Assembly: GCF_000737315.1 (NCBI RefSeq)
Contig: NZ_JMCB01000006.1
Location: forward strand, 764,001 to 1,012,000
Reading direction: 5' to 3'
Origin: Hyalangium minutum
GTDB taxonomy: Bacteria > Myxococcota > Myxococcia > Myxococcales > Myxococcaceae
DNA: 248,000 nucleotides
This document shows positions 970 to 248,000 of this stretch, piece after piece. The notes under the pieces were generated by a model that was not told where the DNA came from, made no database searches, and saw only the letters and a program-made list of their open reading frames with translations. Position 1 is the first letter of the stretch. The number at the start of each line of letters is the position of its first letter. The position numbers were made by a program, and so were the translations under genes.

Positions 970-3756
970 ATGGAAGTCCGTCCCGAAGCTGAGCTCACGG
1001 GGTTCTCGGCGATGGACGCCCTGGAGGCCCTGGAGGATGGGTTCCTGGCGCTGGACGCGTCTCTGAAGGTGTGTGCCGCCAACCGGGCCGCCGAGCAGCT
1101 CCTGACGCTGTCCCGCTCGGGGCTGTGCGGGCAGGCGCTGAGCACGGTGCTGGGAGAGCCAGGGGCCTCGGCCGCGTTGCTGGAAGGCTGCCAGCGTGCG
1201 CTGTCCGAGCAGGTGCCCACGCGGCTCGTGGAACACCGGGCCTCGGCCGGCCAGTGGCTGGAGATCCGGCTGCGCCCCCAGCGCGGGCAGGTGTGGCTCT
1301 TCTTGCGAGACGTCACCTGGGAGCACCGCACGGAGGAGCGGCTGAGGGACTTCGAGCGGCAGCAGGCCGTGCTCCGGTACGTCATCGCCAACGTGCCCCA
1401 CGCCATCTTCTGGAAGGACCGGGAGGGGCGCTTTCTCGGAGCCAATCAGAACTTCGTCTCGGACTCGGGCGCGGGGACGGTGGAGAACCTGATCGGCAAG
1501 ACGGACTACGACATCTGGAAGCGCGAGGAGGCGGACTTCTTCGTCCAGGTGGATCGCCAGGTGATGCAGAGCGGCACGCCGATGCTCGACATCGAGGAGC
1601 CCGTCCGGCGCGCGGATGGCTCGGAGCGCACGCTGCTGACCAGCAAGGTGCCGTTGCGGGACGAAGCGGGCCAGGTGATGGGGATGCTGGGCATCTACGC
1701 GGACATCACCGAGCGCAAGCGCGGCGAGCGGGAGGTGCAGAAGGCGAAGGACGCGGCCGAGGCGGCGGTGCGCGCCAAGAGCGAGTTCCTCACGGTGATG
1801 AGCCACGAGCTGCGCACCCCGCTCACGTTGATCCTGGGTCCGCTGGGGGTGGTGCTCTCCGATGCTTCGGGTGAGCTGCCCGAGCATGTCCGGCGCGAGC
1901 TGGAGCGCATCCACCGCAACGCCGAGCGGCTCTTCCGGCTCGTGGACGACATCCTGGATCACCAGAAGGTGGAGGCGGGCCGGATGGAGGTGCACTGGGA
2001 GCCGGCGGAGATTGCCTCGCTCACGGAGCAACTGGTGGAAGATGCGCGCTCGGCGGGGGCCATCCGGGGCGTCGAGGTGCGCTTCGAGGCCGATGCCCAC
2101 CTGGGCGTCGTGCCGCTGGACCGGCGCAAGTTCGAGAAGATTGTCCTGAACCTGCTGGGCAACGCGCTCAAGTTCACGCCGTCAGGAGGCTCCATCGTCG
2201 CGGCGCTGCGGGCGCGGGACTCGTGGGTGGAGCTGTCGGTGACGGACACGGGGCCGGGCATCCCCGAGTCCAAGCAGGGGCTGCTCTTCCAGCGCTTCCA
2301 GCAGCTCGACGGCTCCACCACGCGCAAACACGAGGGGACCGGCATGGGGCTGGCCATCGTGAAGGAGTTCGCCGAGCTGATGGGGGGCGAGGTGGCCGTG
2401 GAGAGCAAGCCCGGCGAGGGCTCGCGGTTCATCGTCCGCCTGCCTCGGAGCGCGGATCGGCTCGTGGAGCCAGCGCTGAGCACCGGGCGCACTCCGGGCT
2501 CGAGGGCGGGGTACTTCACGCCCGCGCCACTGCCCATGGGCTCCCCGGTTCCGGCGCCGGAGCGGCAGCCTCAGGAGGCACCTCGCCTGCTCATCGCCGA
2601 TGACAACCCGGACATGCGTGCCTACCTGGCCAGCCTGCTCGGGCGCGAGTACGCGCTGGAGCTGGTGGAGAACGGCCGGCAGGCGCTGGAGGCCATGGAG
2701 CGGCAGCGGCCGGACGTCATCGTCTCGGACGTGATGATGCCGGAGATGGACGGCGCCGAGCTGGTCTCCCGGCTGAAGGCGAGCCCCACGTATCGGGACA
2801 TCCCCATCGTCCTGCTGACGGCCAAGGCCAGCCGCCAGGAGGCGATCGAGGGCCTGGAGATTGGCGCGGACGACTACCTGAGCAAGCCGTTCAGCGCGGC
2901 GGAGCTCCAGGCCCGGGTCCGCGCGGCGGTGCGGATGCACTCGCTCTACCAGGAGCTCCAGGCGCGGAAGCACGAGCTGGAGGAGGCACTGCGCAGGCTG
3001 CGCGCCACGCAGGAGCAACTGCTGCAGAAGGGCAAGATGGCCGCGGTGGGCTCGCTGGTGTCAGGGCTGTGCCACGAGCTGAACAACCCCATGGCTGCCA
3101 TCCGCATGAGCCTCGATCTGATGGTGCGGCGGAAGCTGGCCCCGGAGCGCCAGCGCGAGACGCTGGAGGTCATCGAGCGCCAGTCCCAGCGCTGTGTGAG
3201 CCTGGTGAAGGCCCTGCGGGAGTTCTCGAGCCGCCCTGCTGTCATCCGCGAACCCTGTGAGGTGGGCGCGGTGGTGGGCCGGGTCATCGAGCTCGTTGGG
3301 CCTCAGCTCTCGCGGCGGAGACTGTCGCTCGATGCGCGGCTCGCTGCCGCCGAGCTGCCTCGGCTTCACCTCCATGGCGCGGAGCTGGAGACGGCCCTGC
3401 GCCACGTGGTGACGAACGCCCTGGAAGCCAGCCCAGAGGGCGGCACGGTGACCCTCGAGGCCCGGCCGCTGGCGCGCGAGGGGACGCAGGGCGTGGAGGT
3501 GGCGGTGATCGATCACGGCCCGGGCATTTCTCCGGACACGCTGCCGCACGTCATCGAGCCGTTCTTCACCACGAAGCCGCCGGGAGAGGGCACCGGGCTC
3601 GGGCTGTCGTTGACCCACCGGTTCATTGATGCACACGGAGGCACCTTGAACATCGAGAGCGAGCGGGGCCGTGGAACGACGGTGCGGATGTGGCTGCCCG
3701 CCGCGCCGGTGCTCGAGACGGCCGCGTCAGCCGAAGGGGAGGCTCCACTGCAATGA
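970..3756 (+). CDS. Hybrid histidine kinase (PAS-PAS-HisKA-HATPase-REC-HisKA-HATPase)
   Basis: SHELRTPL H-box, NALKFT, GTGMGL, REC SDVMMP, second CHELNNP kinase core. Confidence 0.9.
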   Translation: MEVRPEAELTGFSAMDALEALEDGFLALDASLKVCAANRAAEQLLTLSRSGLCGQALSTVLGEPGASAALLEGCQRALSEQVPTRLVEHRASAGQWLEIRLRPQRGQVWLFLRDVTWEHRTEERLRDFERQQAVLRYVIANVPHAIFWKDREGRFLGANQNFVSDSGAGTVENLIGKTDYDIWKREEADFFVQVDRQVMQSGTPMLDIEEPVRRADGSERTLLTSKVPLRDEAGQVMGMLGIYADITERKRGEREVQKAKDAAEAAVRAKSEFLTVMSHELRTPLTLILGPLGVVLSDASGELPEHVRRELERIHRNAERLFRLVDDILDHQKVEAGRMEVHWEPAEIASLTEQLVEDARSAGAIRGVEVRFEADAHLGVVPLDRRKFEKIVLNLLGNALKFTPSGGSIVAALRARDSWVELSVTDTGPGIPESKQGLLFQRFQQLDGSTTRKHEGTGMGLAIVKEFAELMGGEVAVESKPGEGSRFIVRLPRSADRLVEPALSTGRTPGSRAGYFTPAPLPMGSPVPAPERQPQEAPRLLIADDNPDMRAYLASLLGREYALELVENGRQALEAMERQRPDVIVSDVMMPEMDGAELVSRLKASPTYRDIPIVLLTAKASRQEAIEGLEIGADDYLSKPFSAAELQARVRAAVRMHSLYQELQARKHELEEALRRLRATQEQLLQKGKMAAVGSLVSGLCHELNNPMAAIRMSLDLMVRRKLAPERQRETLEVIERQSQRCVSLVKALREFSSRPAVIREPCEVGAVVGRVIELVGPQLSRRRLSLDARLAAAELPRLHLHGAELETALRHVVTNALEASPEGGTVTLEARPLAREGTQGVEVAVIDHGPGISPDTLPHVIEPFFTTKPPGEGTGLGLSLTHRFIDAHGGTLNIESERGRGTTVRMWLPAAPVLETAASAEGEAPLQ

Positions 3757-4286: not shown

Positions 4287-5828
4287 ATGCGTTCCTCCGT
4301 CCTGCTGCTGCTGGCGCTCGCTGCCCTGTCAGGTGCGTGTGCTGCGACCGAACCCGCCCGTTCCTCCGCGAGGCCCCCTGCTTCCGAGCCCGCGGCTCCT
4401 CTCGCTGCTGTCCCCGCGAACCCTCCCATACCCCCCGAGGCTCCTGCCCCGGCTGCCGTGAGTCCCACTGCGGCTCCTGGAGATGCCAGCACCGCTCTCG
4501 TGGATCCGGCGACAGCGGGCGCGGACGCGCAGTTCGCTCGAGGCGTGGAGGCGCTGAAGGCCCAGGACACGAAGACGGCCATCACCGAGCTCGCCGCTTG
4601 TGTGGAGGCGATGCCCTCTCGGGTGGACTGCCGGTGGGAGCTGGGCTGGGCGTACTCGCTGGAGAACCGGTGGGCCGAGGCGCTCGCGCAGTTTACGGAG
4701 GTCCAGAAGCTCAAGCCGGATCAGCCGGATCTGGAGACGGCGCTCACGCAGGCCCGTGCGCAGGCGGAGCTGGCGGAGCGGCTCGCCAAGCCCCCGGAGC
4801 CTTCTCAGCGCCCGCCTCCTCCCGAGGGTGCGCGCGTGCGCATTCGCGCCGCGGGGGATGTGATGCTCGGCACCACGGTGCCCGAGGGCCACCTGCCTCC
4901 CGAGGGCCCCGATGGCGTCCTCGCCGCCGTGCGCCCGCTGCTGGAGGACGCGGACCTCACGTTCGTGAACCTCGAGGGCCCGCTGTGCGACATCGGCGAG
5001 ACGAAGAAGTGCCGCTCGCCCCGGAACTGCTACGCGTTCCGCTCGCCCACGGCCTACGGCCAGGCGCTCAAGGACGCGGGGGTGGATGTGGTCTCCACGG
5101 CAAACAACCACTCGGGCGACTTCGGCGAGCTGTGCCGGCGAGAGACGGAGTCCACGCTCGACACGCTCGGCATCGGCTGGAGCGGGCCGCCGGGCACGGT
5201 GGCCACGCTGGAGCGCAACGGGCTGCGCATTGGCCTGGTGGCGTTTCACACCTCGGCCTCGTGCAACCACCTCAACAACCTGCCCACGGCGAAGGCGCTG
5301 GTGAGCTCGGCGGCGGCCACGCATGACCTGGTCATCGTCTCCTTCCACGGAGGCGCCGAGGGCGCCAAGGCCGTGCGCGTGCCACCCGGCAAGGAGAAGT
5401 TCATGGGCGAGGACCGGGGCGACCTGCGTACCTTCACGCACGCCATGGTGGATGCGGGTGCGCACCTCGTCATGGGCCACGGCCCCCACGTGGCGCGAGC
5501 CATGGAGTTCTACAAGGGCCGGCTGATTGCCTACTCCCTGGGCAACTTCGCCACCTACGGGCGCTTCACGGTGACGGGTGTGCAGGGGCTGGGCATGGTG
5601 CTCGAGGTGGAGCTGGACCGCGAGGGCCGCTACCTCTCCGGCCGCATCCTCCCCACCCGCCAGCACGGCGAGGGCATCCCCGCCCCGGATCCGGACGGCG
5701 GCGTCACCTCGCTGGTGCGCAAGCTGACGGCCCAGGACTTCCCGCTGACGGGCGCGCGGATCTCCGAGGACGGTGTCATCTCTCCCCTGGAGAAGCCGTC
5801 CGCCTCCCTTCAGCGGGCAACGCCGTAG
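4287..5828 (+). CDS. CapA/PGA_cap family metallophosphatase lipoprotein with TPR
   Basis: Lipobox LSGAC, AAGDVMLG, NLEGP, ANNHSGD, GHGPHV, YSLGNF. Confidence 0.85.
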   Translation: MRSSVLLLLALAALSGACAATEPARSSARPPASEPAAPLAAVPANPPIPPEAPAPAAVSPTAAPGDASTALVDPATAGADAQFARGVEALKAQDTKTAITELAACVEAMPSRVDCRWELGWAYSLENRWAEALAQFTEVQKLKPDQPDLETALTQARAQAELAERLAKPPEPSQRPPPPEGARVRIRAAGDVMLGTTVPEGHLPPEGPDGVLAAVRPLLEDADLTFVNLEGPLCDIGETKKCRSPRNCYAFRSPTAYGQALKDAGVDVVSTANNHSGDFGELCRRETESTLDTLGIGWSGPPGTVATLERNGLRIGLVAFHTSASCNHLNNLPTAKALVSSAAATHDLVIVSFHGGAEGAKAVRVPPGKEKFMGEDRGDLRTFTHAMVDAGAHLVMGHGPHVARAMEFYKGRLIAYSLGNFATYGRFTVTGVQGLGMVLEVELDREGRYLSGRILPTRQHGEGIPAPDPDGGVTSLVRKLTAQDFPLTGARISEDGVISPLEKPSASLQRATP

Positions 5829-16969: not shown

Positions 16970-17373
16970 GTCCCGCCCGGTTCGCTTCAGTCCGCTAAAT
17001 CACTGACCTGAAAGAATGCATGGGCTGAAATGACGGTTCCTGCCCTTCATCCATGCGTCTTTGCAAGGGGCTGCGGACGACCCGTGCGTATGGCTGCTTC
17101 GTGAGCGGCTGCGCTCTGGGAGCAGTGTGGGGCGCGTGCACTTCGAGCACTCGGGTTGAGCGCATGGAGGGTGAGAAGGACCGCGACTTCTTCAACTCTG
17201 TGCTCGTGGACGCTCTGCGCAGATGGGCTCCGCCCAGGTGCGGGATCAGTTGACGAATCTGCACGTGATTGGGGTGGCAGAGGGACAAGGGAAACGGGCG
17301 CCACCCGGCGCCTCCTCCTCTTCTCCGGGGCAGCCATCTACCCTGATCACCTCCTCGCAAGATGGGGTGACAT

Positions 17374-17460
17374 ATGCTGCCGTGGCGGATTGCCTGGAAA
17401 GCCGAAGTGTTGCTCGTCGCCAGCGCCGGGGGAACGGCCCTTGAAGGGGTTGCCGCATGA
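17374..17460 (+). CDS. 28 aa leader ORF coupled to downstream toxin (ATGA overlap)
   Basis: MLPWRIAWKAEVLLVASAGGTALEGVAA after a conserved leader motif. Confidence 0.3.
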   Translation: MLPWRIAWKAEVLLVASAGGTALEGVAA

Positions 17461-19253
17461 GGAGCCCAGCAGCGAGTCGGCCCTTGTGGTGGCATGCGGC
17501 CGTCAGCCTCATGCTGCTGGCGGCCTTGGCCGCGCCCGGGGCCCAGGCCTCTGAGAAGACGAGCCAGATGCGGGCCGTGGTGGGGGCGGGGGTCTCTCAG
17601 GGCACCGCGCTGGGCGACCCCTGGGCGCCGCGCACCTCGTACAGCGTGAGCCTATGGGGCTTGTGGGAAGCAGGCCAGGGAGTGGGGGCGCGCGTGACAT
17701 TGCTGCCCCCGGCCACCTCCGCCGGAGCGTGGGAGCTGTCCACCGACGCGGTGGCGCGCTTCACGGGCGAGGGGCCGCTGTACTTCAAGGCCCTCGGTGG
17801 AACGGCCGTCACCTCCCGCCCCTGGTGGCCTCCACGGCTGCGCGCCGGGGGCGAAGCCGGAGTGCACGCCATCCGCGGGAGCATCGGGCTGGAGGTGGGA
17901 GTTGCTGGCGTGTACTCGTTCCCGCCCTCCCGCTTCGCGCAAGGCGAAGGGGTGGTCTCCCTCGGGGTGAGCCTCCTCTTCGGCTTCGGCGCACCGTCCC
18001 GCACGCCTGCCCTGGCCCCGCCTCGGCGTGAGTGGGCGCAGCAGTCCGCCCACAGTCCGCAAGGCGCCGTGCCGCCACGTGAGCCAGGCCCCTCCTCCGA
18101 GGCGGAGCCGAGGCCGGCGGGGCTTGCGCCCGCTGCTTCGCAGGTGGCGCTCACCGCCTTCGCAGAGCGGGACGTGATTCAGCGGATTCTCCTGCTCCAG
18201 AAGCCCGGGGCCGTCCAGGCCTGGTGGAACTCGGGGCCCTGGGAGGACTTGGCTCACTGGAGCCACCCGCTGTCGGAGTGGGAGCACAAGTACGCCGAGG
18301 CCATGAGCGCGGAGACGGTGCCCGAGGCCCTCCGCATGTGGCCGCTGGTGACGCCTCAGCGCCTCACCCCCGCGCAGCGAGAGGACATGGAGCGGCGTCT
18401 GGGCACGGGAGCCGCCGCCGCCCAGGGATATGCCCACTGGGAGAACCGGCGAAGAATCGTCAAACACTACGTCATGACTCACCCAGCCACCCTCCAGGCT
18501 TTGCTGGGGGCGTATGGGCTGGCCAGAGATTCCAACCCGCTGCACTTCGCGCTGGAGCGCGGCTGGCAGATGGGCAGTGGCCAGGAGATGTTCACGGGCC
18601 AGGAGATGTCCCCGCTTGGCGCGGCCCAGGAGTTCTTCACCGCGCTGGCAGTGGGAGTGGCTGCTGGGAAGTTGATGACCGCCACGCGGCCGGTGCCCGG
18701 GTGGGGTGTCCCGGAGCCGGTGGAGCCGGTGCGCCCTGGCAAGGCGGAGGCTTCGCCCGCTCCGCCGAGAGTCACGGCACCTGCTCCAGAACCTGTTCCA
18801 AGGCCAGCACCGCCCGCTCCGGGGCCGGGTACCCTCGCGCCCTCACCCGAACTGGTCCAAGTCCTCACGGGCAAGAACCCAACGCCGCAGGTGCCCGCCG
18901 GCCCACGCCTGCGTCAGGACCTCACCGTCAAGCCGAAGGTGCCAGACCTGTTGCCACGGGGCCGTCCCATCAGCCCCAGCGCCAGGCAGAATGCGCAACT
19001 CCAGGAGGACATCAAGTACCTGGAGGACGTGCTACTCGCCGAGAACATTCGGGTGAACCAGCAGCAAGTGACGCTGGCGAACGGCCAGCGCGTGGGCATC
19101 AATCGGCCGGATCTGCAATTCGACTACAAGGGCCAGCGCTATCATGTGGAGTACGACTCACTGACTTCGGGCCGTGGCCCTGCACACCAGTCGCGCCTCA
19201 CCAACAACGACCCCAACGCCCTCATCATCCGGATCATCATCCCCGAGGAATGA
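17457..19253 (+). CDS. Putative exported polymorphic toxin with C-terminal restriction-endonuclease-fold domain
   Basis: Signal peptide, Pro-rich linker, RPDLQ..VEYD tip; paralog at 238421-240217. Confidence 0.6.
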   Translation: MRSPAASRPLWWHAAVSLMLLAALAAPGAQASEKTSQMRAVVGAGVSQGTALGDPWAPRTSYSVSLWGLWEAGQGVGARVTLLPPATSAGAWELSTDAVARFTGEGPLYFKALGGTAVTSRPWWPPRLRAGGEAGVHAIRGSIGLEVGVAGVYSFPPSRFAQGEGVVSLGVSLLFGFGAPSRTPALAPPRREWAQQSAHSPQGAVPPREPGPSSEAEPRPAGLAPAASQVALTAFAERDVIQRILLLQKPGAVQAWWNSGPWEDLAHWSHPLSEWEHKYAEAMSAETVPEALRMWPLVTPQRLTPAQREDMERRLGTGAAAAQGYAHWENRRRIVKHYVMTHPATLQALLGAYGLARDSNPLHFALERGWQMGSGQEMFTGQEMSPLGAAQEFFTALAVGVAAGKLMTATRPVPGWGVPEPVEPVRPGKAEASPAPPRVTAPAPEPVPRPAPPAPGPGTLAPSPELVQVLTGKNPTPQVPAGPRLRQDLTVKPKVPDLLPRGRPISPSARQNAQLQEDIKYLEDVLLAENIRVNQQQVTLANGQRVGINRPDLQFDYKGQRYHVEYDSLTSGRGPAHQSRLTNNDPNALIIRIIIPEE

Positions 19254-19268: not shown

Positions 19269-20006
19269 ATGACGCAAGAGATGAAGGGACTGCTGCTGGA
19301 GGACCGCTGGGCGCCTGTCACCTCGACGATGGGCTTTCTGGAACTGGGGGTGGAGCAGGCGGCACAAGCCTTCGCCACGTGGCATAGAGAGGTGCTGACG
19401 CCCCGTGGCATCACCGTGGAGGTACTCCCCGTCTCGGGCACCCTGGAGCAAGTCCTCTCCAGCCTGCTGCCCCTGACCAGTGGGGAGAGGCGGCGGCACC
19501 TATTTATCCCGACGCGCAGCGCCTGGACAGCCTACGTCGCCGACCAGTGGACCGGGACGGATGCCGCCAGCCCCATGCGCTCCATGGCCCGGAGGCTGAG
19601 CATCCGGTGCCTGCGGGTGGTCACCGTGCCCCACACGCTGCGCGGGGATCGAGGCCGCTATGGCGCGGTGATGCTGGAGGTGTACGGCCCGGAGCAGCCG
19701 GGGAAGATCAGCAGTACTGTGCGCGCCCTGGCCGCTGCCAATGACGGGGGCCGCTGGGTCTTCGAGCAGGAGGGTGAGCCCTTCCCCTTCGAGCAGGTAG
19801 AGAAGTACCAGGCGCGCCGGGTGAGGGACCGGTTCACCTTGGAGATGCTCAAGGACTACCTGCGCCACCTGGGGCTGGCCCCCTTCGAAGAGGACTTCTA
19901 CCTGCCTCAGGGCTCTTGCGCGTGGCTCATCCAGAAGACGGGCCCCTTCGGCACCATCACGCGAGAATACACGCTGGAGGAGGCCCGCGCCGCCCGCGTG
20001 TTGTGA
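19269..20006 (+). CDS. Putative immunity protein
   Basis: Directly after toxin; near-identical copy at 237672-238409. Confidence 0.6.
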   Translation: MTQEMKGLLLEDRWAPVTSTMGFLELGVEQAAQAFATWHREVLTPRGITVEVLPVSGTLEQVLSSLLPLTSGERRRHLFIPTRSAWTAYVADQWTGTDAASPMRSMARRLSIRCLRVVTVPHTLRGDRGRYGAVMLEVYGPEQPGKISSTVRALAAANDGGRWVFEQEGEPFPFEQVEKYQARRVRDRFTLEMLKDYLRHLGLAPFEEDFYLPQGSCAWLIQKTGPFGTITREYTLEEARAARVL

Positions 20007-20120: not shown

Positions 20121-21470
20121 TCAGACGCCCAGCTTCTCCTCGAGGTCATCCAGCTCGCGCTTCACCGTGGGGTCTGTCTCGCGAGACCCCTCCACCTTCC
20201 GCACCGAGGCGATGACGGTGGAGTGGTCCTTGTTGAACCGCGAGGCGATCTCCGGGAACGAGCTCTTCGTCAGCTTGCGGCACAGGTACATGGCCACCTG
20301 GCGCGCGTGGGCCAGCGCCTTGTGCCGCCGGTCCTCCTTCAGCGCCTCCACCGTCACCTTGTAGTACCGCGCCACCTCGCGCTGAATCGCCTCCACGTCC
20401 ACCACCCGGTTGGCTGGGAGGATGTCCTTCAGCACGTTCGCCGCGAACTCCACCGTCAGCGGCTGCCGCGACAGGCTGTGGATGGCCGACAGCTTCACCA
20501 GCGCACCCTCCAGCTCGCGCACGTTGCGCTGGATGTGCTTGGCGATGAAGTGCGCCACGTCATCCGGCAGCGTCAGCCGCTCCGCCTCCGCCTTCTTCTG
20601 GAGGATGGCCACCCGCGTCTCGTAGTTCGGCTCGCGGATGTCCGTAATCAAGCCCATGGTGAACCGGCTGCGCAGCCGCTCCTCCAGGCCCGGAATCTCC
20701 GAGGGCAGCGTGTCCGAGGTGAGGACGATGGCCTTGTTCAGCTCGTAGAGCGTGTTGAAGGTGTAGAAGAACTCCTTCTGCGTCTCCTCGCGCTTGCCGA
20801 GGAACTGGATGTCGTCGATGAGCAGCACATCGCACTCCTCGCGGAACTTCCGCCGGAAGTCCGCCATGCGGTGCTCTCGCACGCTCTCCACGTACTCGTT
20901 GGTGAACTGCTCGCTCGACAGGTACACCACCCGCTGAGAGCCGTCCTTCTCCCAGATGTGGTTGCCCACCGCGTGCAGCAGGTGCGTCTTCCCCAGCCCC
21001 GTGCCCCCGTAGATGTAGAGGGGGTTGTAGTTGTGGCCCGGCTTCTCGGACACCGCCTGCGCCGCCGCCGCCGGCAGCTGGTTGCTGTCGGAGACCACGA
21101 AGGTGGCAAACGTGAACCGGGCGTTCAGCCGAGGCGGACGGGCCGAGTTCTCCTTGACTGTTGGTGCGGGCAGCAGGTTCGGCCCCCCCGAGGGCTCCTC
21201 CACCACCTCGTAGGCCACTTTGACCAATCCGTTCCCGACTCGGGCCAGCGTGGCCTCCAGCAGCGAGCGGTAGTGGTCATCCACCCAGTCGCGGAAGAAG
21301 CGATCAGGAACGCCCAGCACCAGCGCACCCTCGCGTACATCCAAGGCATGCATGCGTTCGAGCCACGTCAACGCGTACGTCTTTCCCTCCTGCCGGATGG
21401 TATCCAGCGTCCGGGTCCAAATAATTCCGGCACTTGGCGGCGTACTCAGGGCTTCTGCGAGGGCACTCAC
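20121..21470 (-). CDS. dnaA: Chromosomal replication initiator DnaA
   Basis: YGGTGLGKTHL, LLIDDIQF, NVRELEGAL, KDHSTVI; ORF extends to 21545. Confidence 0.97.
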   Translation of the reverse strand: MSALAEALSTPPSAGIIWTRTLDTIRQEGKTYALTWLERMHALDVREGALVLGVPDRFFRDWVDDHYRSLLEATLARVGNGLVKVAYEVVEEPSGGPNLLPAPTVKENSARPPRLNARFTFATFVVSDSNQLPAAAAQAVSEKPGHNYNPLYIYGGTGLGKTHLLHAVGNHIWEKDGSQRVVYLSSEQFTNEYVESVREHRMADFRRKFREECDVLLIDDIQFLGKREETQKEFFYTFNTLYELNKAIVLTSDTLPSEIPGLEERLRSRFTMGLITDIREPNYETRVAILQKKAEAERLTLPDDVAHFIAKHIQRNVRELEGALVKLSAIHSLSRQPLTVEFAANVLKDILPANRVVDVEAIQREVARYYKVTVEALKEDRRHKALAHARQVAMYLCRKLTKSSFPEIASRFNKDHSTVIASVRKVEGSRETDPTVKRELDDLEEKLGV

Positions 21471-21851
21471 ACGTGTCTCGGGGATGCAAAATGGGCGACG
21501 GAAGCGAGGGTCGACCGTGCTAACAAACGCACACTGGACGATCAAGCACCCAAGTCAAAGGGCCGGAAGTCCGACGCTTTCTGCCGCCATTTCTGATCGG
21601 CAACGGCCATGCCGTTTTGGCTTGATTGTGGTGGCGGCCGACCCACCCCCCAGGTCTTGGGGTCGCCCGCTGAGGGTTCACGGGGAGTGTGGATGGCGCA
21701 AAAAGAGGGGCGGCGCTGATCGGCCGGGCAGGCGGCGCGGACGTCCGACACACGTCCAACGTTGACTTGGGTGGGAGAACGGGTTACGAGCGCCGCCTTT
21801 TCCTAGGCCGCGTCGGATCAGAGACGTCGCCGGTGTTTCAGGAGTTCAGCC

Positions 21852-41600: not shown

Positions 41601-42164
41601 ATGCCCAAGCGGTTTTTCGAGCTCGCCGACGATGTGATTGTCCCGCACCGCTGGCACCTGGACACGCCGACGGACAGTCAGGGCCGCAAAGTGGACGATG
41701 CGCTGTTCAGGCTCGGGAGTCCCGTCCACATTCAGGGGCGCTTGAAAGTTCCTGTCGAGATCGCGGGCAAGCCACTGGACTTCACGGAAGCGAACGTCGG
41801 TGTTCCGGTGGTCCATGTCCGGGTTGCGTCCATGTTCGCGGAGCTGGCCCCTCACGATGTGCAACTCTTCCCTGTGGACGTTGAGGGCCAGCCGGATCAG
41901 TACCTCATCCTTGTGGCCACGCGGCTCATCCGCTGTATCGACGAGAAAGCATCCCGGATCCGGCTCTGGACTCATGAAGACGGGCTCCCAGAGATGGTCG
42001 GCCAGTATGCCTCCGTGCGCGACATGCGCATCGACAAGGCCCAGGTGGGAAGCGCCCAGGTGTTTCGTCCTGAGGGGTGGATCGTCTCTCTGATCGTCTC
42101 TGGGGAGCTCAAGGACGCCTTGGAGCGCATGGGCGCCACAGGCACGAGGTTCGAGGAAGTCTAA
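41601..42164 (+). CDS. Imm11/DUF1629-like immunity protein (orphan copy)
   Basis: Paralog of 43600-44163 and 69318-69881. Confidence 0.75.
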   Translation: MPKRFFELADDVIVPHRWHLDTPTDSQGRKVDDALFRLGSPVHIQGRLKVPVEIAGKPLDFTEANVGVPVVHVRVASMFAELAPHDVQLFPVDVEGQPDQYLILVATRLIRCIDEKASRIRLWTHEDGLPEMVGQYASVRDMRIDKAQVGSAQVFRPEGWIVSLIVSGELKDALERMGATGTRFEEV

Positions 42165-42225: not shown

Positions 42226-43590
42226 ATGAAGCAGAGGCAGGTGCAGTGCAGGGCCGGTGCCTTGCTCCTCGCGTTTCTCGTGGGATGCAGCAGTGTTCCG
42301 CGAGTCCCCCACGTGGAGCAGGCCGCCCCGGGTAAGGCCGTCGTCCACATTCCGCGCGCGGCGGAGCTGCAGCTCGTCGTGGTGGACAAAGAGGAGTTCC
42401 AGAAGGCCATTCGCAGGCTGGCGCGCGAGGCGCGGCTGTCCGGCTCCCCGCGACAGACGGTGGAGCGGATGTTCCGGATGGACGCGCAGTTCGGTAACTA
42501 CCTCTACCTCTTGAGGGACAAGAAGCTGGTGCCGGCGGGGCCAGGCGAGCTGCTGGAAGGGACGCTGACGAAAGAGGACTTGGAGACGGCCGAGCGCTAC
42601 CGGCTGTGGTGCCGGGACGTCCACGGCTTCTACGGCGACTGTCTCGGGGGAGCGCTGGTGGCAGGGCGCTACCTGGACATGCACGGCCGCTACATCTGGG
42701 CGTTGGCGCTGAGCAAGAGCCCGGTGTTGGAGGAAATGAAAAAGGCGTTGGGGGAGATGGTGCAAGTGCGCGCCCTCATCAACACAGTCCTATGGACGCT
42801 GGGTTCCATGCTGCTGATCCTCGCGCTCAACCCCGTGGCTCCTGCGCTGGTGGCGGTGGTGGGCCTGGGGCTGGTTCTGTACGTGGGCGTGGACACGCTG
42901 CAGAACCTCGTGTCCGGCTGGCTCGAGTTGATGGAGGAGGTGAAGGTGGCCAACACCTTCGAGCAGCTCCGCGAGGCGGGCGAACGCTTTGGGAAGATTC
43001 TCGGGCGCGAGGCGGCCCGCGCGTTCGCCATGCTGTTGATGGCGGCCATTGGCTCGACGGCGCAGCAGTTCGCGGCGAAGGTGCCGACACTGCCCGGTTC
43101 GGCGCAGGTGGCCGTGCAGGCCGAGGGTGTGGCAGGAATCCCGCTGCCCGCGTTGGGTGCAGTGGAGGAGTTGGCGCTGGCGGCCGAGGGCGTGAGCGTG
43201 ACGGTGGCCGCCACGGCGATGACCATGGGGGCCAGCGGCAGTGGCGGCACGAGCCCCTGCATCGAGACGCACCACATCGCTACCATTTGCAACGACACCT
43301 CCACCGCGCGTGGCGGGCCATGGACGCCGCGGTTCCGAGTCATCTTCGCCAAGGCGGGAATGTCGATGGATGACCCGGCGAACAAGATGCCGCTGCCGGG
43401 GCACTATGGGCCTCACCCCGAGCGGTACCACCAGATCGTCTATGATGAATTGTTCACGGCAACGAGTACTTGTCGCAGCATCTTGGACTGCCGTGAGAGG
43501 TTGACGCGCGCCCTTCGGGTTCTGGCGAAGGATATCTCCACACCAGGAACGGAGCTGAACCAGCTCCTGACCCGCCCATCGCCTCGTTAG
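42226..43590 (+). CDS. Lipoprotein toxin with AHH nuclease tip (SitA-like)
   Basis: Lipobox LVGC, ETHHIATI, GHYGPHPERYH. Confidence 0.8.
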   Translation: MKQRQVQCRAGALLLAFLVGCSSVPRVPHVEQAAPGKAVVHIPRAAELQLVVVDKEEFQKAIRRLAREARLSGSPRQTVERMFRMDAQFGNYLYLLRDKKLVPAGPGELLEGTLTKEDLETAERYRLWCRDVHGFYGDCLGGALVAGRYLDMHGRYIWALALSKSPVLEEMKKALGEMVQVRALINTVLWTLGSMLLILALNPVAPALVAVVGLGLVLYVGVDTLQNLVSGWLELMEEVKVANTFEQLREAGERFGKILGREAARAFAMLLMAAIGSTAQQFAAKVPTLPGSAQVAVQAEGVAGIPLPALGAVEELALAAEGVSVTVAATAMTMGASGSGGTSPCIETHHIATICNDTSTARGGPWTPRFRVIFAKAGMSMDDPANKMPLPGHYGPHPERYHQIVYDELFTATSTCRSILDCRERLTRALRVLAKDISTPGTELNQLLTRPSPR

Positions 43591-43599
43591 AAGGAGATC

Positions 43600-44163
43600 A
43601 TGCCACAGCGTTTTTTCAGACTCGCCGACGATGTGCGGGCTGCCCACCGCTGGCATCTCGATACGCCGAAGGACCGTCAGGGCCACACGGTGGATTACAG
43701 AGACTTCAGTCGTGGAACGCCTGTCCCGGCCAAGGACCGCTTGCGAATTCCCGTCGAGATCTCGGGCAACCCGCTGGACTACACAGAGGCGAACGTGAAC
43801 ATCCCAGTGGTTCACGTCCGCGTCGCGTCCGTGTTCGCGGAGCTGGCCCCTGCTGATGTGCAGATGATCCCGGTGGATGTGGAGGACCACCCAGACCAGT
43901 ACCTCATCCTCGTGGCCACACGGCTCATCCGCTGTATCGACGAGAAGGCATCTCGTATCCGTCTCTGGACACACGAAGATGGACTCCCTGCGATGGTCGG
44001 CCAGTACGCCTCGGTACGAGACCTGCGTATCGATAGGGCCCAGGTCGGAAGCGCCCAGGTATTCCGGCCCGAAGGGTGGACCGTCTCGCTCATCGTCTCC
44101 GGGGAGATTCATGACGCCCTGGAGCGCATGGGCGCCACAGGCACGCGGTTCGAGGAGGTCTAA
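43600..44163 (+). CDS. Imm11/DUF1629-like immunity protein
   Basis: Directly downstream of AHH toxin. Confidence 0.75.
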   Translation: MPQRFFRLADDVRAAHRWHLDTPKDRQGHTVDYRDFSRGTPVPAKDRLRIPVEISGNPLDYTEANVNIPVVHVRVASVFAELAPADVQMIPVDVEDHPDQYLILVATRLIRCIDEKASRIRLWTHEDGLPAMVGQYASVRDLRIDRAQVGSAQVFRPEGWTVSLIVSGEIHDALERMGATGTRFEEV

Positions 44164-67865: not shown

Positions 67866-67940
67866 GTGCTAGGCGAACAGTCACTTTCTCCGCAGGGCAG
67901 CCCCCTAACCTTCTCCCCTCCTCGCATGAAGGAGTGACAC

Positions 67941-69308
67941 ATGGGGCTGAGGCGAATTCCCTGGAGAAGGATGAGCGCACTTGTCGTCGCGTTCCTCGTG
68001 GGATGCAGCAGCATCCCACGGGTCCCCCACGTGGAGGACACCGGCCAAGGCCAAGCCGTCGTCCACATTCCCCGCACGGTGGACCTGCAACTCGTCGTGG
68101 TGAAACCAGAGGAGTTCCAGCAGGCCATGAGGCGACTGGCGCGCGAGGTGCGACTGTCAGGCACCCCGCGTCAGACGGTGGAGAAGATGTTTCAGATGGA
68201 CCCGCAGTTCGGCAACTACCTCTACCTGCGGGCGGACAAGAAGTTGGTGCCGCTGGGTTCGGGCGAACCCTGGGACGGCACGTTGACGCAAGACGATCTG
68301 GAGACGGCCGAGCGCTACCGGGTCTGGTGCCAGCGCGTTTACAACGTCTACGGGGACTGTCTCGGGGGCGCGTTGGTGGGTGGGCGCTACCTGGACATGC
68401 ACGGCCGCTACATCTGGGCGCTGGCGCTGAGCAAGAGCCCGGTGATCGACGAGATGAAGAAGGCGCTGGGGGAGATGGTGGAAGTCCGCGCGCTCATCAA
68501 CACGGTCTTGTGGACGTTGGGTTCCATGCTGCTGATCCTGGCGCTCAACCCCGTAGCTCCGGCGCTGGTGGCGGTGGTTGGCCTGGGGCTGATTCTGTAC
68601 GTGGGTTACGACACGCTCCGCAACCTTGTCACCGGCTGGATCCAATTGATGGAAGAGGTGAAGGTGGCCACCACCTTCGAGCAGATCCGCGATGCGGGCG
68701 AGCGCTTCGGGAAGCTTCTCGGGCGAGAGGCAGCGCGCGCATTCGCCATGCTCCTGATGGCGGCCATTGGCTCGACGGCGAAGCTGTTCGCGGCCAAGGT
68801 GCCGACGCTGCCCGGCTCGGCGCAGGTGGCCGTGCAGGCCGATGGCACGGCAAAAATCTCGCTGTCCGCGTTGGGCTCAGTGGAGGAGATCGCGCTGACG
68901 GCGGAGGGCGTGAGCGTGACGGTGGCAGCCACCGCGATGACGATGGGGGCCAGTGGCAGTGGCAGCACAGGCCCCTGCATCGAGACGCACCACATCGCCA
69001 CCATCTGCAACGACACGTCCACCGCGCGCGGGGGCCCGTGGACACCGAGGTTCCGGGAGCTCTTCACCAAGGCGGGAATGTCGATGGAGGATCCGGCGAA
69101 CAAGATGCCTCTGCCGGGGCACAAAGGACCGCACCCCGAGCGGTATCACCAGATCGTCATGGACGAACTTGCCGGTGCAACGGAGACCTGTCCCAGCGTC
69201 GTGGAATGCCGGGAGGCGTTGGCTGGCGCACTCCGGAAACTGGCCAAGCAGATCGCCACCCCGGGAACAGAACTGAACCAACTCGTCACCCGAGCCACGC
69301 CACGATAA
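67941..69308 (+). CDS. Lipoprotein toxin with AHH nuclease tip (SitA-like)
   Basis: Lipobox LVGC, ETHHIATI, GHKGPHPERYH; paralog of 42226. Confidence 0.8.
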   Translation: MGLRRIPWRRMSALVVAFLVGCSSIPRVPHVEDTGQGQAVVHIPRTVDLQLVVVKPEEFQQAMRRLAREVRLSGTPRQTVEKMFQMDPQFGNYLYLRADKKLVPLGSGEPWDGTLTQDDLETAERYRVWCQRVYNVYGDCLGGALVGGRYLDMHGRYIWALALSKSPVIDEMKKALGEMVEVRALINTVLWTLGSMLLILALNPVAPALVAVVGLGLILYVGYDTLRNLVTGWIQLMEEVKVATTFEQIRDAGERFGKLLGREAARAFAMLLMAAIGSTAKLFAAKVPTLPGSAQVAVQADGTAKISLSALGSVEEIALTAEGVSVTVAATAMTMGASGSGSTGPCIETHHIATICNDTSTARGGPWTPRFRELFTKAGMSMEDPANKMPLPGHKGPHPERYHQIVMDELAGATETCPSVVECREALAGALRKLAKQIATPGTELNQLVTRATPR

Positions 69309-69317
69309 ACGGAGTCC

Positions 69318-69881
69318 ATGTCCCAGCGTTTCTTCAGACTCGCCGACGATGTCAACGTCCCGCACCGCTGGCATCTAGCAATGCCCAGGGACCGACAGAG
69401 CCTCAAAGTGGATGACGGGCAGTTCAGGCTTGGCTTCCCCGTCCTCTTCAAGGAGCGATTGAGAATCCCCGTCGAGACTGCGGGCACACCGCTGGACTTC
69501 ACAGAGGCGGGCATCATGATCCCGGTGGTTCATGTCCGGGTCGCGTCCATGTTCGCAGAGCTGGCCCCAGATGATGTGCAACTGATCCCCGTGGACGTGG
69601 AGGGCCAGCCGGATCAGTACCTCATCCTTGTGGCCACACGCCGCATCCACTGTATCGACGAAAAGGCATCCCGGATCGAACTCTGGACGCATGAGGACGG
69701 AGTGCCTCACAAGGTCGGTCAGTATTTCTCCGTGCGCGACCTGCGCATCGACAAGTCCAAGGTGGGGAGCGCCCAGGTGCTTCGGTGCGAGGGGTGGACG
69801 GGCCCGCTGATCGTCTCCGGGGAGATCAAGGACGCCTTGGATCGCATAGGGGCCACAGGCACGAGGTTCGAGGAGGTCTAG
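69318..69881 (+). CDS. Imm11/DUF1629-like immunity protein
   Basis: Downstream of AHH toxin. Confidence 0.75.
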   Translation: MSQRFFRLADDVNVPHRWHLAMPRDRQSLKVDDGQFRLGFPVLFKERLRIPVETAGTPLDFTEAGIMIPVVHVRVASMFAELAPDDVQLIPVDVEGQPDQYLILVATRRIHCIDEKASRIELWTHEDGVPHKVGQYFSVRDLRIDKSKVGSAQVLRCEGWTGPLIVSGEIKDALDRIGATGTRFEEV

Positions 69882-150369: not shown

Positions 150370-150650
150370 GACAGCAGCCAAGCGGCAAGGCCCCCTGCAT
150401 CGAGGCCCACCACATCGCCACCATCTGCAACGACATGTCCACCGCATGCGGGGGAGCGTGGACGCCGAGGTTCCGGGAGAGCTTCGCGAAGGCCGGGATG
150501 ACGCTGCGTCCTTAAGGAACTCGCCGATGCAACGGCGACCTGTCGCAGCGTTGTCGAATGCTAGGAGGCATTGACCGGGCAACTGCGGAAACTGGCCAAG
150601 CAAATCTCCACCCCCGGAACAGAACTGAACCAGCTCGGCACCCGGCAGCC
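150370..150650 (+). pseudogene. Fragmented 3-prime end of an AHH toxin gene
   Basis: CIEAHHIATICND..WTPRF, then ..PGTELNQL with a deletion between. Confidence 0.7.
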
Positions 150651-150865
150651 ACCCCAGGGACGCAGCGGCTCACCGTGCGCGGCGCCGTCCGCGTGCCTGC
150701 TGGCTTTGGTGTGAGCGACTGGGGAGCTTGGCGGGTCCGAGCAGTAGGGTGTTCTTCAAGAATTGCTGGATTTTATTCCTGTGTGACAGTCTGGCCAGCG
150801 CGTCTTTGGATCCGTGGGCAGGCAGGAAGGCCACCGGGTTACGCTTCCGCTTCAGGGGACCGCTA

Positions 150866-237671: not shown

Positions 237672-238409
237672 TCACAACACGCGGGCGGCGCGGGCCTCCT
237701 CCAGCGTGTACTCCTGCATCATGGTACCGAAGGGGCCTGTCTTCTGGATGAGCCACGCGCAAGAGCCCTGCGGCATGTAGAAGTCCTCCTCGAAGGGAGC
237801 CAGCCCCAGGTGGCGCAGGTAGTCCTTGAGCATCTCAAAGGTGAAGCGGTCCCTTACCCGGCGCTCCTGGTACTTCTCCACCTGCTCGAAGGGGAAGGGC
237901 TCACCTTCCTGGTCGAAGACCCAGCGGCCTCCATCATTGGAAGCGCTCAGGGCGCGCACATAGTTGTGGATCTTCCCCGGCTGCTCCGGGCCGAACACAT
238001 CCAGCATGACGGCACCATAGCGGCCTTGGTCCCCGCGCAGCGTGTGGGGCACGGCGACCACCCGCAGGCACCGGATGCTCAACCTCCGGGCCATGGAGCG
238101 CATGGGGCTGGCGGCATCCGTCCCGGTCCACTGGCTGGAGACATAGGCTGTCCAGGCGCTGCGCGTCGGGATGAACAGGTGCCGCTGGGTTTCTCCACCG
238201 TTCAGGGGCAGCAGGCTGGAGAGAACTTGCTCCAGGGTGCCCGAGACGGGGAGCACCTCCACGGTGATGCCACGAGGCGTCATCACCTCTCTCTCCCACG
238301 TGGCGAAGGCTTGCGCCGCCTGCTCCGCCCCCAACTCCAGAAAGCCCATCGTCGAGGTGACAGGCGCCCAGCGGTCCTCCAGCAGCAGACCCTTCATCTC
238401 TTGCGTCAT
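237672..238409 (-). CDS. Putative immunity protein, paralog of 19269
   Basis: MTQEMKGLLLEDRWAPV identical start. Confidence 0.65.
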   Translation of the reverse strand: MTQEMKGLLLEDRWAPVTSTMGFLELGAEQAAQAFATWEREVMTPRGITVEVLPVSGTLEQVLSSLLPLNGGETQRHLFIPTRSAWTAYVSSQWTGTDAASPMRSMARRLSIRCLRVVAVPHTLRGDQGRYGAVMLDVFGPEQPGKIHNYVRALSASNDGGRWVFDQEGEPFPFEQVEKYQERRVRDRFTFEMLKDYLRHLGLAPFEEDFYMPQGSCAWLIQKTGPFGTMMQEYTLEEARAARVL

Positions 238410-238420
238410 TCAGGCTCGCC

Positions 238421-240217
238421 TCATTCCTCGGGGATGATGATCCGGATGATGATGGCTTTGGGGTCGTTGTTGGTGAGGCGCGACTGGTGTGCAGGGCCAC
238501 GGCCCGAGGTGGGTGAGTCGTACTCCACCTGATAGCGCTGGCCCTGATAATCGAATTGCAGATCCGGCCGATTGATTCCCACGCGCTGACCATTCTTGAG
238601 CGTCAGTTGCTGCTGGTTCACCCGAATGTTCTCGGCGTGTAGCACGTCCTCCAGGTACTTGATGTCCTCCTGGAGTTGAGCATTCTGCCTGGGGCTGGGG
238701 CTAATGGGACGGGTCGTCGGGCGTAGGCCTGGCACCTTCGGCTTGACGGTGACGTCCTGACGCAAGCGTGGGCCGGCTGGCACCTGCGGCGTTGGGTTCT
238801 TGCCCGTGAGCGCTTGAGCCAGTTCGGGTGAGGGCGCGAGGGTGCCCGGCGCCGGAGGGAGCGGTGCTGGCGCCGGAGCGGGTTCTGGAGCAGGCGCCAC
238901 AGCTCTCGGCGGAGCGAGTGGAGCCTCCACCCTGCCAGGGCCCACCGGCTCCACCGGCTCCGGGACACCCCACCCGGGCACCGGCCGCGTGGCGGTCATC
239001 AACTTCCCAGCGGCCACTCCCACCGCAAGCGCTGTGAAGAACTCCTGGGCCGCGCCGAGCCGGGACACCTCCTGCTCGGTGAACATCTCCTGGCCACTGC
239101 CCATCTGCCACCCGCGCTCCAGCGCGAAGTGCAGCGGGTTGACATCCCTCGCCAGCCCATACACCCCCAGCAAGGCCTGAAGGGTGGCTGGGTGAGTCAT
239201 GAAGTAGTGCTTGACGATTCTCCGCCGGTTCTCCCAGTGGGCATATCCCTCGGCGGCGGCGGCTCCCGTGCCCAGGCGCCGCTCCATGTCCTCGCGCTGC
239301 TCGGGGGTGAGGCGCTGTGGCGTCACCAACGGCCACATGCGGAGAGCCTCGGGCACCGTCTCCGCGCTCATGGCCTCGGCGTACTTGCGCTCCCACTGCG
239401 ACAGCGGGTGGCTCCAGTGAGCCATGTCCTCCCAGGGGCCCGAGTTCCACCAGGCCTGGACGGCCCCGGGCTTCTGGAGCAGGAGAATCTGCTGAATCAC
239501 GTCCCGCTCTGCGAAGGCGGTGAGCGCCACCTGCGAAGCAGCGGGCTCAAGCCCCGCCGTCCTCGCCTCCGCCGCGGAGGAGGGGCCTGGCTCACGTGGC
239601 GGCAAGGCGCCTTGTGGACTCTGGGCGGATTGCTGCGCCCACGGGCGCTGAGGCGGGGCGAGGGCAGGCGTGCGGGACGGTGCGCCGAAGCCGAAGAGAA
239701 GACCCACCCCGAGGGAGAACACTCCTTCGCCTTGCGCGAAGCGGGAGGGCGGGAACGCGTACACGCCCGAAAGGCCCACCTCCAGCCCGATGCCGCCACG
239801 GATGGCGTGCACTCCGGCTTCGCCGCCAGCGCGCAGCCGGGGAGGCCACCAGGAGCGGGGGGTAACTGCCGCTCCACCGAGGGCCTTGAAGTACAGCGGC
239901 CCCTCCCCCGTGAAGCGCGCCACCGCGTCGGTGGACAGCTCCCACGCTCCGGCGGAGGTGGCTGGGGGCAGCAAGCTCCAGCGCGCCCCGAGCCCCTGGC
240001 CTGCTTCCGACAAGCCCCACAGGCTCACGCTGTACGAGGTGCGCGGTGCCCACGCGCTACCCAGTGCAGCGCCCCGGGAAACCTCTGCCCCCACCACGGC
240101 CCGCATCTGGCTCGTCTCGTCAGAGGCCTGTGCCCCGGGCGAGGCCAAGACGGCCAGCAACAAGAGGCTGACAGCCGCATGCCACCGCGAGGGTTGGCGC
240201 GCTCCCGGGCCCCTCAT
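238421..240217 (-). CDS. Putative exported REase-fold toxin, paralog of 17457
   Basis: RPDLQ..VEYD tip; ORF track extends to 240316. Confidence 0.65.
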   Translation of the reverse strand: MRGPGARQPSRWHAAVSLLLLAVLASPGAQASDETSQMRAVVGAEVSRGAALGSAWAPRTSYSVSLWGLSEAGQGLGARWSLLPPATSAGAWELSTDAVARFTGEGPLYFKALGGAAVTPRSWWPPRLRAGGEAGVHAIRGGIGLEVGLSGVYAFPPSRFAQGEGVFSLGVGLLFGFGAPSRTPALAPPQRPWAQQSAQSPQGALPPREPGPSSAAEARTAGLEPAASQVALTAFAERDVIQQILLLQKPGAVQAWWNSGPWEDMAHWSHPLSQWERKYAEAMSAETVPEALRMWPLVTPQRLTPEQREDMERRLGTGAAAAEGYAHWENRRRIVKHYFMTHPATLQALLGVYGLARDVNPLHFALERGWQMGSGQEMFTEQEVSRLGAAQEFFTALAVGVAAGKLMTATRPVPGWGVPEPVEPVGPGRVEAPLAPPRAVAPAPEPAPAPAPLPPAPGTLAPSPELAQALTGKNPTPQVPAGPRLRQDVTVKPKVPGLRPTTRPISPSPRQNAQLQEDIKYLEDVLHAENIRVNQQQLTLKNGQRVGINRPDLQFDYQGQRYQVEYDSPTSGRGPAHQSRLTNNDPKAIIIRIIIPEE

Positions 240218-240515
240218 TCGGCAAACCCTTCGAGGGCGGTGCCTCCGGCGCTGGCGCCGAGCAACACAAGGGACAGCGCTCCGGCCTTCCAGAGAAGCCT
240301 CTGCCACGGCCAGCATGTGTCACCCCTTCATGCGAGGAGGTGATCAGGTTAGAGGGCCGCCACGGAGAAGAGGAGGATCCGCCGGGTGGCACCCGTGCTT
240401 CGGCTCCAGCTCCCTTGTCGAAGCTGTTGGGGAGGGTGACGGGGCCGGGATTCTCGATGGCGGCGAGGGCTGCGCGTAACAGGGAGTAGAAGAGCGCGGC
240501 CACCTCGGTGCCTCG

Positions 240516-247677: not shown

Positions 247678-248000
247678 GGTGCCGCGCGCTCAGGCTTGGG
247701 GCCCAGGAGCTACTGGATCGACCTTACCCATTGCTTCGCTGGCTTGAACTCGGTGGAGGAAGCCGGGGAGGAGAGTTTGAGAGGGGGCCAGCGGCGCCGC
247801 TGCTGAAGCTCATCCACGAGGCTGCGGCTCGTTGCCTCACCTGCTTCCTCACGCGGGAAGGTGGAGCAGCGCGCTAGATGCAACCCAGCAGGCAGGACAG
247901 TGGCAGCGGCGCGGCGTTACGTGGGGAGGGAGCAGGGACGTGGCGAGCGCCCAGGCGTCAGCGTCGGGCGCGAGGCTGCCCCCGCAGGGGGGCTGGAGGT

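Follow-up and report, generated by a model that had tools for sequence, protein, structure and literature searches.

The leader described here lies in a 248,000-nucleotide (nt) stretch of Hyalangium minutum DNA (contig NZ_JMCB01000006.1, positions 764,001 to 1,012,000, forward strand), referred to below as the window. It precedes SitA5 lipoprotein genes encoding an AHH nuclease domain and genes of a second, putative toxin family, family X. Hyalangium genomes contain family X in many copies each, with no annotation beyond hypothetical. SitA1 to SitA7 are families of lipoprotein toxins that are passed on by outer-membrane exchange (OME) via TraAB. The original prediction for this DNA had singled out a short motif in front of three unrelated or distant toxin loci and had taken it for a shared promoter/ribosome-binding-site (RBS) platform onto which different toxin cassettes had been recombined. 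We searched the window for the corresponding degenerate 27-mer, CCTCCTCGCAWGAWGGRGTGACAYATG, and found it without mismatch at 17350-17376 (+), 67917-67943 (+), and 240314-240340 (−), which confirms the three sites, with the middle one beginning at 67917 instead of 67918. No further match appeared in the window even when three mismatches were allowed. A match occurred in 0 of 100 dinucleotide shuffles, giving a chance expectation of 0 versus three complete copies, and a motif scan of viral contigs returned 0 matches. The motif does not stand alone but makes up the final ~25 nt of a conserved noncoding block, which comprises a ~65-nt core in every copy and ~270 nt at full length. The copies in the window are listed below, with negative positions counted from the leader ATG.

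17273-17376 (+): leader copy 1, 5'-truncated at about −100, before a family X locus (nhmmer profile positions 211-311, E 1e-24; covariance model R1, 91 bits)
67879-67943 (+): leader copy 2, core only (~65 nt, ending at about −62), before SitA5 (nhmmer, 67887-67943; covariance model R1, 67869-67943, 64 bits)
240314-240416 (−): leader copy 3, 5'-truncated at about −100, before a family X paralog (nhmmer, E 2e-34; covariance model R1, 100 bits)
247875-248000 (+): 5' part of a full-length leader (nhmmer profile positions 98-223), third family X locus, with its ATG ~90 nt past the window end

The fourth, partial copy, cut off by the window end, was detected with an nhmmer profile built from full-length copies, and locus L032, which overlaps the window end, shows that a third family X gene lies behind it and that this leader is full length. 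A covariance model (R1) of the 73-nt core recovered only the three complete window copies, at 100, 91, and 64 bits; the next match, at 16.6 bits, and weaker ones were inspected and dismissed as noise. The genes behind the complete copies are as follows.

67941-69308 (+): SitA5-family lipoprotein toxin with an AHH nuclease domain, 455 amino acids (aa) (NCBIfam NF050093; Pfam PF14412)
69318-69881 (+): Imm11 immunity gene (sitI), 9 nt downstream of the 68-kb toxin (Pfam PF07791, 2.6e-11)
17457-19253 (+): putative family X toxin (598 aa), with a type I signal peptide, a predicted 8-stranded beta-barrel, a helical domain, and a variable C-terminal domain
19269-20006 (+): putative family X immunity gene, 245 aa, always found after family X
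238421-240217 (−): family X toxin paralog, 87% identical to the 17-kb copy
237672-238409 (−): putative family X immunity gene, 90% identical to the 17-kb copy

As predicted, the ATG at 67941 opens an AHH lipoprotein toxin, with both SitA5_escort and Pfam AHH matches. This gene matched NCBIfam NF050093 (SitA5_escort) at 1e-90 with 303.8 bits, against a cutoff of 160, and Pfam PF14412 (AHH) at 3e-17, and its translation reads as a type II signal peptide with a lipobox Cys (LVGC), MGLRRIPWRRMSALVVAFLVGC preceding SS. By all sequence criteria tested, it is a bona fide SitA5 member. Also as predicted, the ATG at 17374 opens a 28-codon open reading frame (ORF). Its stop codon, TGA, shares bases with the start codon (ATGA) at 17457, where a 598-aa protein with a signal peptide begins. 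The upstream similarity reported between the 17-kb and 240-kb copies was found over ~100 nt; it runs on downstream as well, because both loci are paralogs, with toxins 87% identical and downstream 245-aa proteins 90% identical. Thus, the window contains two toxin families behind the motif, not three unrelated or distant loci.

Outside the window, a motif-centered scan of one genome per species with the pattern CCTCCTCGCANGANGGNGTGACA yielded 15 loci, all of them in Hyalangium/Myxococcaceae genomes and metagenome-assembled genomes, and each was followed by SitA5 or family X. With motif-centered and gene-centered sampling combined, 36 copies in all were classified by tblastn for the downstream gene: about 20 precede SitA5, 15 precede family X, and 1 precedes an immunity-only remnant (L007). 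A toxin or immunity cassette therefore followed in 36 of 36 copies and a non-toxin gene in none, in agreement with the predicted association with toxins. Among metagenomic SitA5 loci for which upstream DNA was available, 10 of 10 had the leader, three of them in diverged versions; it was also present at 3 of 3 Stigmatella SitA5 loci (three species) and at every family X locus sampled, the very diverged L030 among them. It precedes SitA5 (AHH plus Imm11) in Hyalangium, Stigmatella, and related soil metagenome contigs, and in the motif-centered set its ATG opens SitA5 lipoproteins with two N-terminal types, MLLWRMLWKAEALFLVLLVGC... and MGLRRIPWRR...LVGC. In L007 (~2857-3460), the toxin has been deleted and the leader plus nine sitA5 codons stand directly before Imm11; thus, the leader would also drive an immunity-only remnant. 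As far as these associations indicate, the block is not a general platform for many cassettes but the 5' region native to a single SitA5 (AHH) subfamily. Of the platform originally proposed, the shared upstream/RBS region and the recombination of one family onto it hold up, its generality does not, and the promoter is one that we infer. The original prediction was right in essence, and the feature is real and non-random, but it is narrower than stated.

In full-length copies, aligned conservation reaches ~−270. Coding potential of the block was considered and rejected, as the copies differ by single-nucleotide indels. No conserved divergent upstream neighbor was evident; the called neighbors vary by locus, and the ORF listing is noisy in GC-rich DNA. 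At another SitA5 locus, L026 (~187-1250), an internal deletion fuses SitA5 residue ~208 to Imm11 residue ~39.

Within the core, conservation is concentrated in a few elements, which in the 17-kb copy lie at the following positions.

17314-17322 (+): CCTCCTCTT block at a −35-like position, at least 90% conserved across copies (alignments)
17339-17344 (+): TACCCT, −10-like T-A-n-n-n-T, with T, A, and the final T invariant or nearly so (alignment A4)
17347-17370 (+): hairpin of anti-Shine-Dalgarno (anti-SD) sequence (TCACCTCC), loop, and Shine-Dalgarno (SD) sequence (GGGGTGA), 4 nt before the ATG (RNAfold, −12.3 kcal/mol)

Column conservation was read from alignments A4 and A7 and from a 35-copy alignment. 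In the 35 copies, the strongly conserved core columns are CCTCCTCTT at −60 to −52 and GC.GCCCTCTAnCCTG at −46 to −31; the further conserved blocks are CCTCCTC.CA and then GG.GTGAC.C just 5' of the ATG. The T-A-n-n-n-T element (TAACCT, TACCCT, or TAGCCT) occupies −35 to −30 in 34 of 36 copies, at a spacing of ~16 to 18 nt to CCTCCTCTT. To judge from this arrangement, the two blocks most likely represent a core promoter with a start near −24. Moreover, three independent 5' truncations end at ~−62 to −64: the 68-kb copy, L029, whose core begins directly after the polX stop codon, and L033b, whose core sits between tandem cassettes. Since these independent truncations stop just 5' of the CCTCCTCTT block, the ~65-nt core looks like a selected minimal unit, which would fit a self-sufficient expression unit. 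A terminator consensus scan of five leaders, the three window copies and two full-length ones, gave matches only on the opposite strand or outside the block. A sigma-54 reading of TGGCAG-N5-TACC was rejected by eye in alignment A4, where the GG varies (AG, TG, GA in L007, L015, L024) and CC stands in place of GC at −12.

The SD sequence can be folded into a hairpin with an upstream pyrimidine tract in 36 of 36 copies, and diverged copies keep this hairpin with other sequence (L030, with CCCUCCUG/CAGGAGGG; L033a; L034; L026). The median probability of the SD being unpaired was 0.21 in leaders versus 0.40 at 85 other window starts, and a quarter of these background starts were as SD-occluded as the leaders. 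Furthermore, 84% of the hairpin cells were paired, compared with 36 to 64% when the partner columns were slid (28 copies). RNAalifold drew a long stem for 12 close copies, but without covariation (term +0.49); with 26 or 18 more diverse copies, only a 6-bp SD hairpin was left (−4.1 kcal/mol). Rfam gave no match at gathering score across the window and none at E of ≤1 on a full-length leader. The type-1 anti-SD, GATCACCTCCT / GAUCACCUCCU (17346-17356; 240344-240334 on the minus strand), is identical to the conserved 3' tail of 16S rRNA. Full-length leaders additionally carry a perfect SD-like sequence, GGAGGUGA / GGAGGTGA, at ~−105, ~80 nt upstream of the anti-SD. On these predictions, an SD hairpin is plausible, while a riboswitch-like reading is unlikely.

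Other sequence features accompany some of the leaders. A near-palindrome, GCCACCCGGCGGC, lies in the −270 to −65 part of the leader. In L033 (~4400-4470), an 18-nt perfect inverted repeat (CACTGTGAACCAGTTCAT / ATGAACTGGTTCACAGTG) stands just 5' of the second tandem family X core-only leader; it is possibly an operator, or else a small mobile element. On the minus strand 5' of the 240-kb leader (~240640-240680 and ~240850) are two copies of a ~33-nt repeat, GACCCCATCGTTCGGACCAAATTCCGGGCCC, which translates as repeated PHRSDQIPGP and may be a small repeat element.

How family X came to stand behind this leader can be read from the sequence that follows the leader ATG, which in the window is as listed here.

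17374-17460 (+): 28-codon ORF, a SitA5 signal-peptide relic (MLPWRIAWKAEVLL..., compared with SitA5 N termini MLPWRMLWKAEALFLVLLVGC); stop codon sharing bases with the start codon of family X (ATGA, 17457-17460)
240215-240316 (−): SitA5 signal-peptide relic in which a 1-nt insertion sets the leader ATG (240316) in frame with family X

In all family X copies, the leader ATG is followed by a relic of the first ~20 to 30 SitA5 signal-peptide codons. Nucleotide identity to SitA5 is ~88% over the first ~34 nt, as in ATGCTGCCGTGGCGGATTGCCTGGAAAGCCGAAG aligned with ATGCTGTCGTGGCGGATTCTCTGGAAGGCCGAAG (~88% identity), and the homology is recognizable to ~+65; it fades near the lipobox position, and the lipobox codons are deleted. 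The state of the relic differs from copy to copy. Among ~15 copies, only the 17-kb copy and L006 retain it intact, as a 28- to 33-codon ORF ending in ATGA. A +1 insertion or frameshift turns it into an in-frame N-terminal extension of family X in the 240-kb copy, L009, L012, L032, and L014; in L004 the start has changed to AGG; and in L003, L034, L030, and L033a deletions have trimmed it to 3 to 14 codons fused in frame, with a hybrid signal peptide, MQPWRVLSKAEALVLVLL-AALAAPRAHA, resulting in L033a. Since frame and state vary in this way, the peptide is a fossil and not a leader peptide. No protein similarity between family X and SitA5 was detected by BLASTP (best E, 0.19). The presence of a SitA5 relic behind the leader thus indicates that family X recombined behind the 5' end of sitA5, and because one relic is common to all family X copies, a single capture followed by duplication is the simplest history. 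From these comparisons, it is most likely that family X captured the leader once and that it then spread by duplication. The swap is a real but fairly ordinary promoter/leader capture between toxin cassettes.

We consider it probable, on the combined evidence, that the motif forms the 3' end of the upstream region native to a sitA5 subfamily, that the core is an expression unit, and that family X captured this leader. In the core, CCTCCTCTT is followed after ~16 to 18 nt by cTcTAnCCT and after another ~5 nt by the pyrimidine anti-SD (type 1, GATCACCTCCT), the loop, and a strong SD (GGGGTGA or AAGGAG) 4 to 7 nt before the ATG. If the two upstream blocks serve as the core promoter, the 27-nt motif would correspond to about the whole ~24-nt 5' untranslated region (UTR), and the anti-SD, by folding onto the SD, would probably damp or condition toxin translation. 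The extra ~200 nt of full-length copies may be upstream regulatory DNA. Family X would have gained the leader when recombination took place within the signal-peptide codons of sitA5, and would have multiplied afterward; given that it acquired the leader, both toxin families would be expressed from one control region.

Several observations weigh against this proposal. A sigma-70 consensus scan of the same five leaders returned no promoter, the −35-like block reads TCCTCT/CCTCTT, unlike TTGACA, and L028 has TC in place of TA in the −10-like block. The homology, the gene associations, the relic, and the pairing potential are shown by the sequences themselves; the promoter, the transcription start, and a regulatory effect of the hairpin are deductions from them. 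The minimum free energy of the hairpin equals that of the background (−10.7 versus −10.6 kcal/mol), and its covariation is marginal (0.114 versus 0.085 when shuffled, reached by 9 of 500 shuffles), a level that related unstructured sequences can give. One SitA5 paralog in the window (42226-43590) has no leader. Furthermore, across 153 SitA5 locus pairs, the core had a mean identity of 0.80, compared with 0.77 for third codon positions and 0.88 for positions 1 and 2. Conservation of the core does not rise above that of third codon positions, and shared descent therefore explains much of the similarity; selection on the whole leader is not demonstrated, and constraint appears concentrated in a few invariant blocks.

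The last figures would also suit plain duplication residue, in which the block is conserved only via recent duplication, horizontal transfer, or gene conversion and contains an ordinary RBS with no specific regulation. The free loss of the 5' two-thirds, with three of the four window copies truncated, points the same way, as does a hairpin energy no different from the genomic background. Yet near-invariant blocks alternate with variable positions, the independent truncations all end just 5' of CCTCCTCTT, the very diverged L030 retains the block order and a perfect SD hairpin, and family X has kept the leader while the adjoining relic decays through frameshifts, start loss, and deletions. We regard duplication residue as an unlikely explanation. 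A structured cis-regulatory RNA would be a ~270-nt 5' UTR acting as a three-part switch of GGAGGUGA (~−105), the anti-SD GAUCACCUCCU, and the SD. In type-1 leaders, each of these elements is complementary to the other two; a long purine/pyrimidine stem appears together with the SD hairpin when RNAalifold is run on 12 close copies, and occlusion of the SD exceeds that in background genes. However, purine/pyrimidine complementarity is near automatic from base composition, the covariation term is about zero or positive (+0.49 with the 12 copies), and the 26 or 18 diverse copies leave only the 6-bp SD hairpin, with no Rfam match. Moreover, three of the four window copies and several others are without the upstream element and have intact genes. 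We thus consider such a switch quite improbable.

A recombination or mobility site, with the block as a cassette boundary of the integron-attC-like kind or as a mobile-element end, would account for upstream neighbors that differ at every locus, and sitAI loci are reported to lie often on mobile elements (PMC8546572). In L019, moreover, a tRNA-like sequence lies upstream: the translated flank at ~−200 to −280 from the leader ATG (...RAIQDSNLWPLAPEANALS) resembles a tRNA gene, which hints at island insertion. The junctions, on the other hand, fall inside signal-peptide coding sequence and not at the block edge, the 5' edge is ragged (−38 to −290), neither a terminal inverted repeat nor a repeat matching it downstream was observed, and leader-like orientation and spacing are found in 36 of 36 copies, so that this explanation is very unlikely. 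Least of all do we expect the 28-aa ORF to be a functional leader peptide (upstream ORF) translationally coupled to family X. The ATGA stop/start overlap at 17457-17460, likewise present in L006, would permit coupling, but the frame is not conserved, being intact in only 2 of ~15 copies, and family X has its own SD.

Capture of the sitA5 leader by family X has parallels in other systems. In the contact-dependent inhibition (CDI) cdiA-CT/cdiI modules and in Rhs orphan modules, toxin/immunity 3' modules are exchanged behind a conserved 5' segment, and displaced remnants persist. Here, too, a conserved 5' segment provides homology and expression signals, and remnants of displaced modules are present; in contrast to CDI and Rhs, the whole toxin gene including the delivery domain is swapped, the junction lies in signal-peptide codons, and the conserved part is mostly noncoding. 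SD-sequestering 5' UTR hairpins are known from RNA thermometers (ROSE/fourU) and from inert type I toxin mRNAs. The present leader resembles these in that an upstream pyrimidine anti-SD can pair with the toxin SD, but its stability is ordinary for a GC-rich genome, its covariation is marginal, and no temperature-sensor signature or processing site has been shown. The integron platform, with one expression platform for different cassettes, corresponds to the picture drawn in the original prediction; unlike in an integron, each cassette here has its own leader copy and not one shared Pc. No integrase or attC-like site was noticed near the copies, although no search was aimed at them.

Myxobacteria use dozens of sitAI loci as "self-identity barcodes," whose expression is not treated in PMC5562445 and PMC8546572. 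A conserved upstream leader of sit genes is likewise not described in these two papers, though an earlier description elsewhere is possible. The ~65-nt core (up to ~270 nt) before nearly every SitA5-subfamily member thus provides a handle on sitA regulation, and the relic before family X is a clean molecular fossil showing that a whole toxin gene, and not only its C-terminal module, is swappable behind the leader. Should the leader prove to be only an ordinary promoter plus RBS, the finding would be useful as annotation but would not go beyond that. Family X, anchored by a beta-barrel according to prediction, may merit study itself.

The sitAI and sitBAI cassettes have many paralogs per genome and modular toxin domains (PMC5562445, PMC8546572). 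The 68-kb gene shares with them the lipobox, the SitA5 escort domain, the AHH toxin, and the downstream immunity gene, whereas family X differs in that its proteins are not lipoproteins and have no match to any Sit model. Its signal peptide ends in ...LAAPGAQA before SE, has no Cys, and is type I-like, without the lipobox of SitA proteins. No NCBIfam or Pfam match to a known escort domain was obtained for family X, SitA5 being the Sit family whose NCBIfam model was confirmed to be among those searched, and neither the family X domains nor the 245-aa protein had a match in PDB sequence searches or Pfam. The family X SD, AAGGGG, lies 7 nt before its ATG. The N-terminal ~430 aa are conserved and the C terminus is variable, P0087 (811 aa) having another C terminus, and the 245-aa gene is always downstream, which is the layout of polymorphic toxins. 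Lipoproteins with YwqJ-deaminase ends share the central helical domain, and one of these (L031) has no leader.

AlphaFold without an alignment gave a pLDDT of 35 and was discarded; it was rerun with a 51-sequence alignment. The resulting model has eight beta-strands at residues 39 to 175 (pLDDT, ~80 to 88), and Foldseek matched this barrel to NspA, Ail, OmpX, the N-terminal domain of OprF, and the OmpA transmembrane domain, with target-normalized TM-scores of 0.5 to 0.67 and E values down to 5e-5. The predicted fold of residues ~39 to 175 is therefore like that of the OmpX/Ail/NspA/OmpA-OprF N-terminal barrels, but family X differs from them in sequence (9 to 17% identity) and adds a helical domain, a toxin-like C terminus, and an immunity-like gene. 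The C-terminal ~90 residues are modeled with modest confidence as a helix plus four strands, and a nuclease fold for this part is only a guess. On these models, family X resembles a polymorphic toxin with a beta-barrel as its outer-membrane anchor. A more far-reaching idea, which we think rather unlikely, is that the leader defines a small regulon co-expressing two kinds of outer-membrane toxin, in which family X would be a class of OME cargo not recognized before, anchored by an OmpX-like 8-stranded barrel in place of a lipid and possibly related to the beta-barrel accessory protein SitB, and the 16S-tail mimic GAUCACCUCCU would throttle translation of both until a signal frees the SD.

As publicly annotated, the third family X gene of H. 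minutum (L032, 558 aa) starts at 2501, past the signal peptide; the true start is likely the ATG of ATGAGGGGCCCGGGA..., at ~2389, ~110 nt upstream.

The SitA5 paralog without a leader, a contrast to the 68-kb locus, has the following surroundings.

41601-42164 (+): orphan Imm11, 62 nt ahead of the 42226 SitA5 paralog
42226-43590 (+): SitA5-AHH paralog without a leader, homologous to the 68-kb SitA5 from residue ~10
43600-44163 (+): Imm11 partner after the 42226 SitA5 paralog

This paralog has a different N terminus, MKQRQVQCRAG..., and diverges from the 68-kb gene upstream of residue ~10. An orphan, frameshifted AHH toxin C terminus at 150393-150657 (+) is 71 to 77% identical to residues 345 to 455 of the 68-kb SitA5, with no Imm11 match nearby. 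Directly downstream of the 17-kb family X locus, and convergent with it, is dnaA (20121-21545, −); thus, the window spans the chromosomal origin region, and three family X and two SitA5 loci lie within ~250 kb of dnaA.

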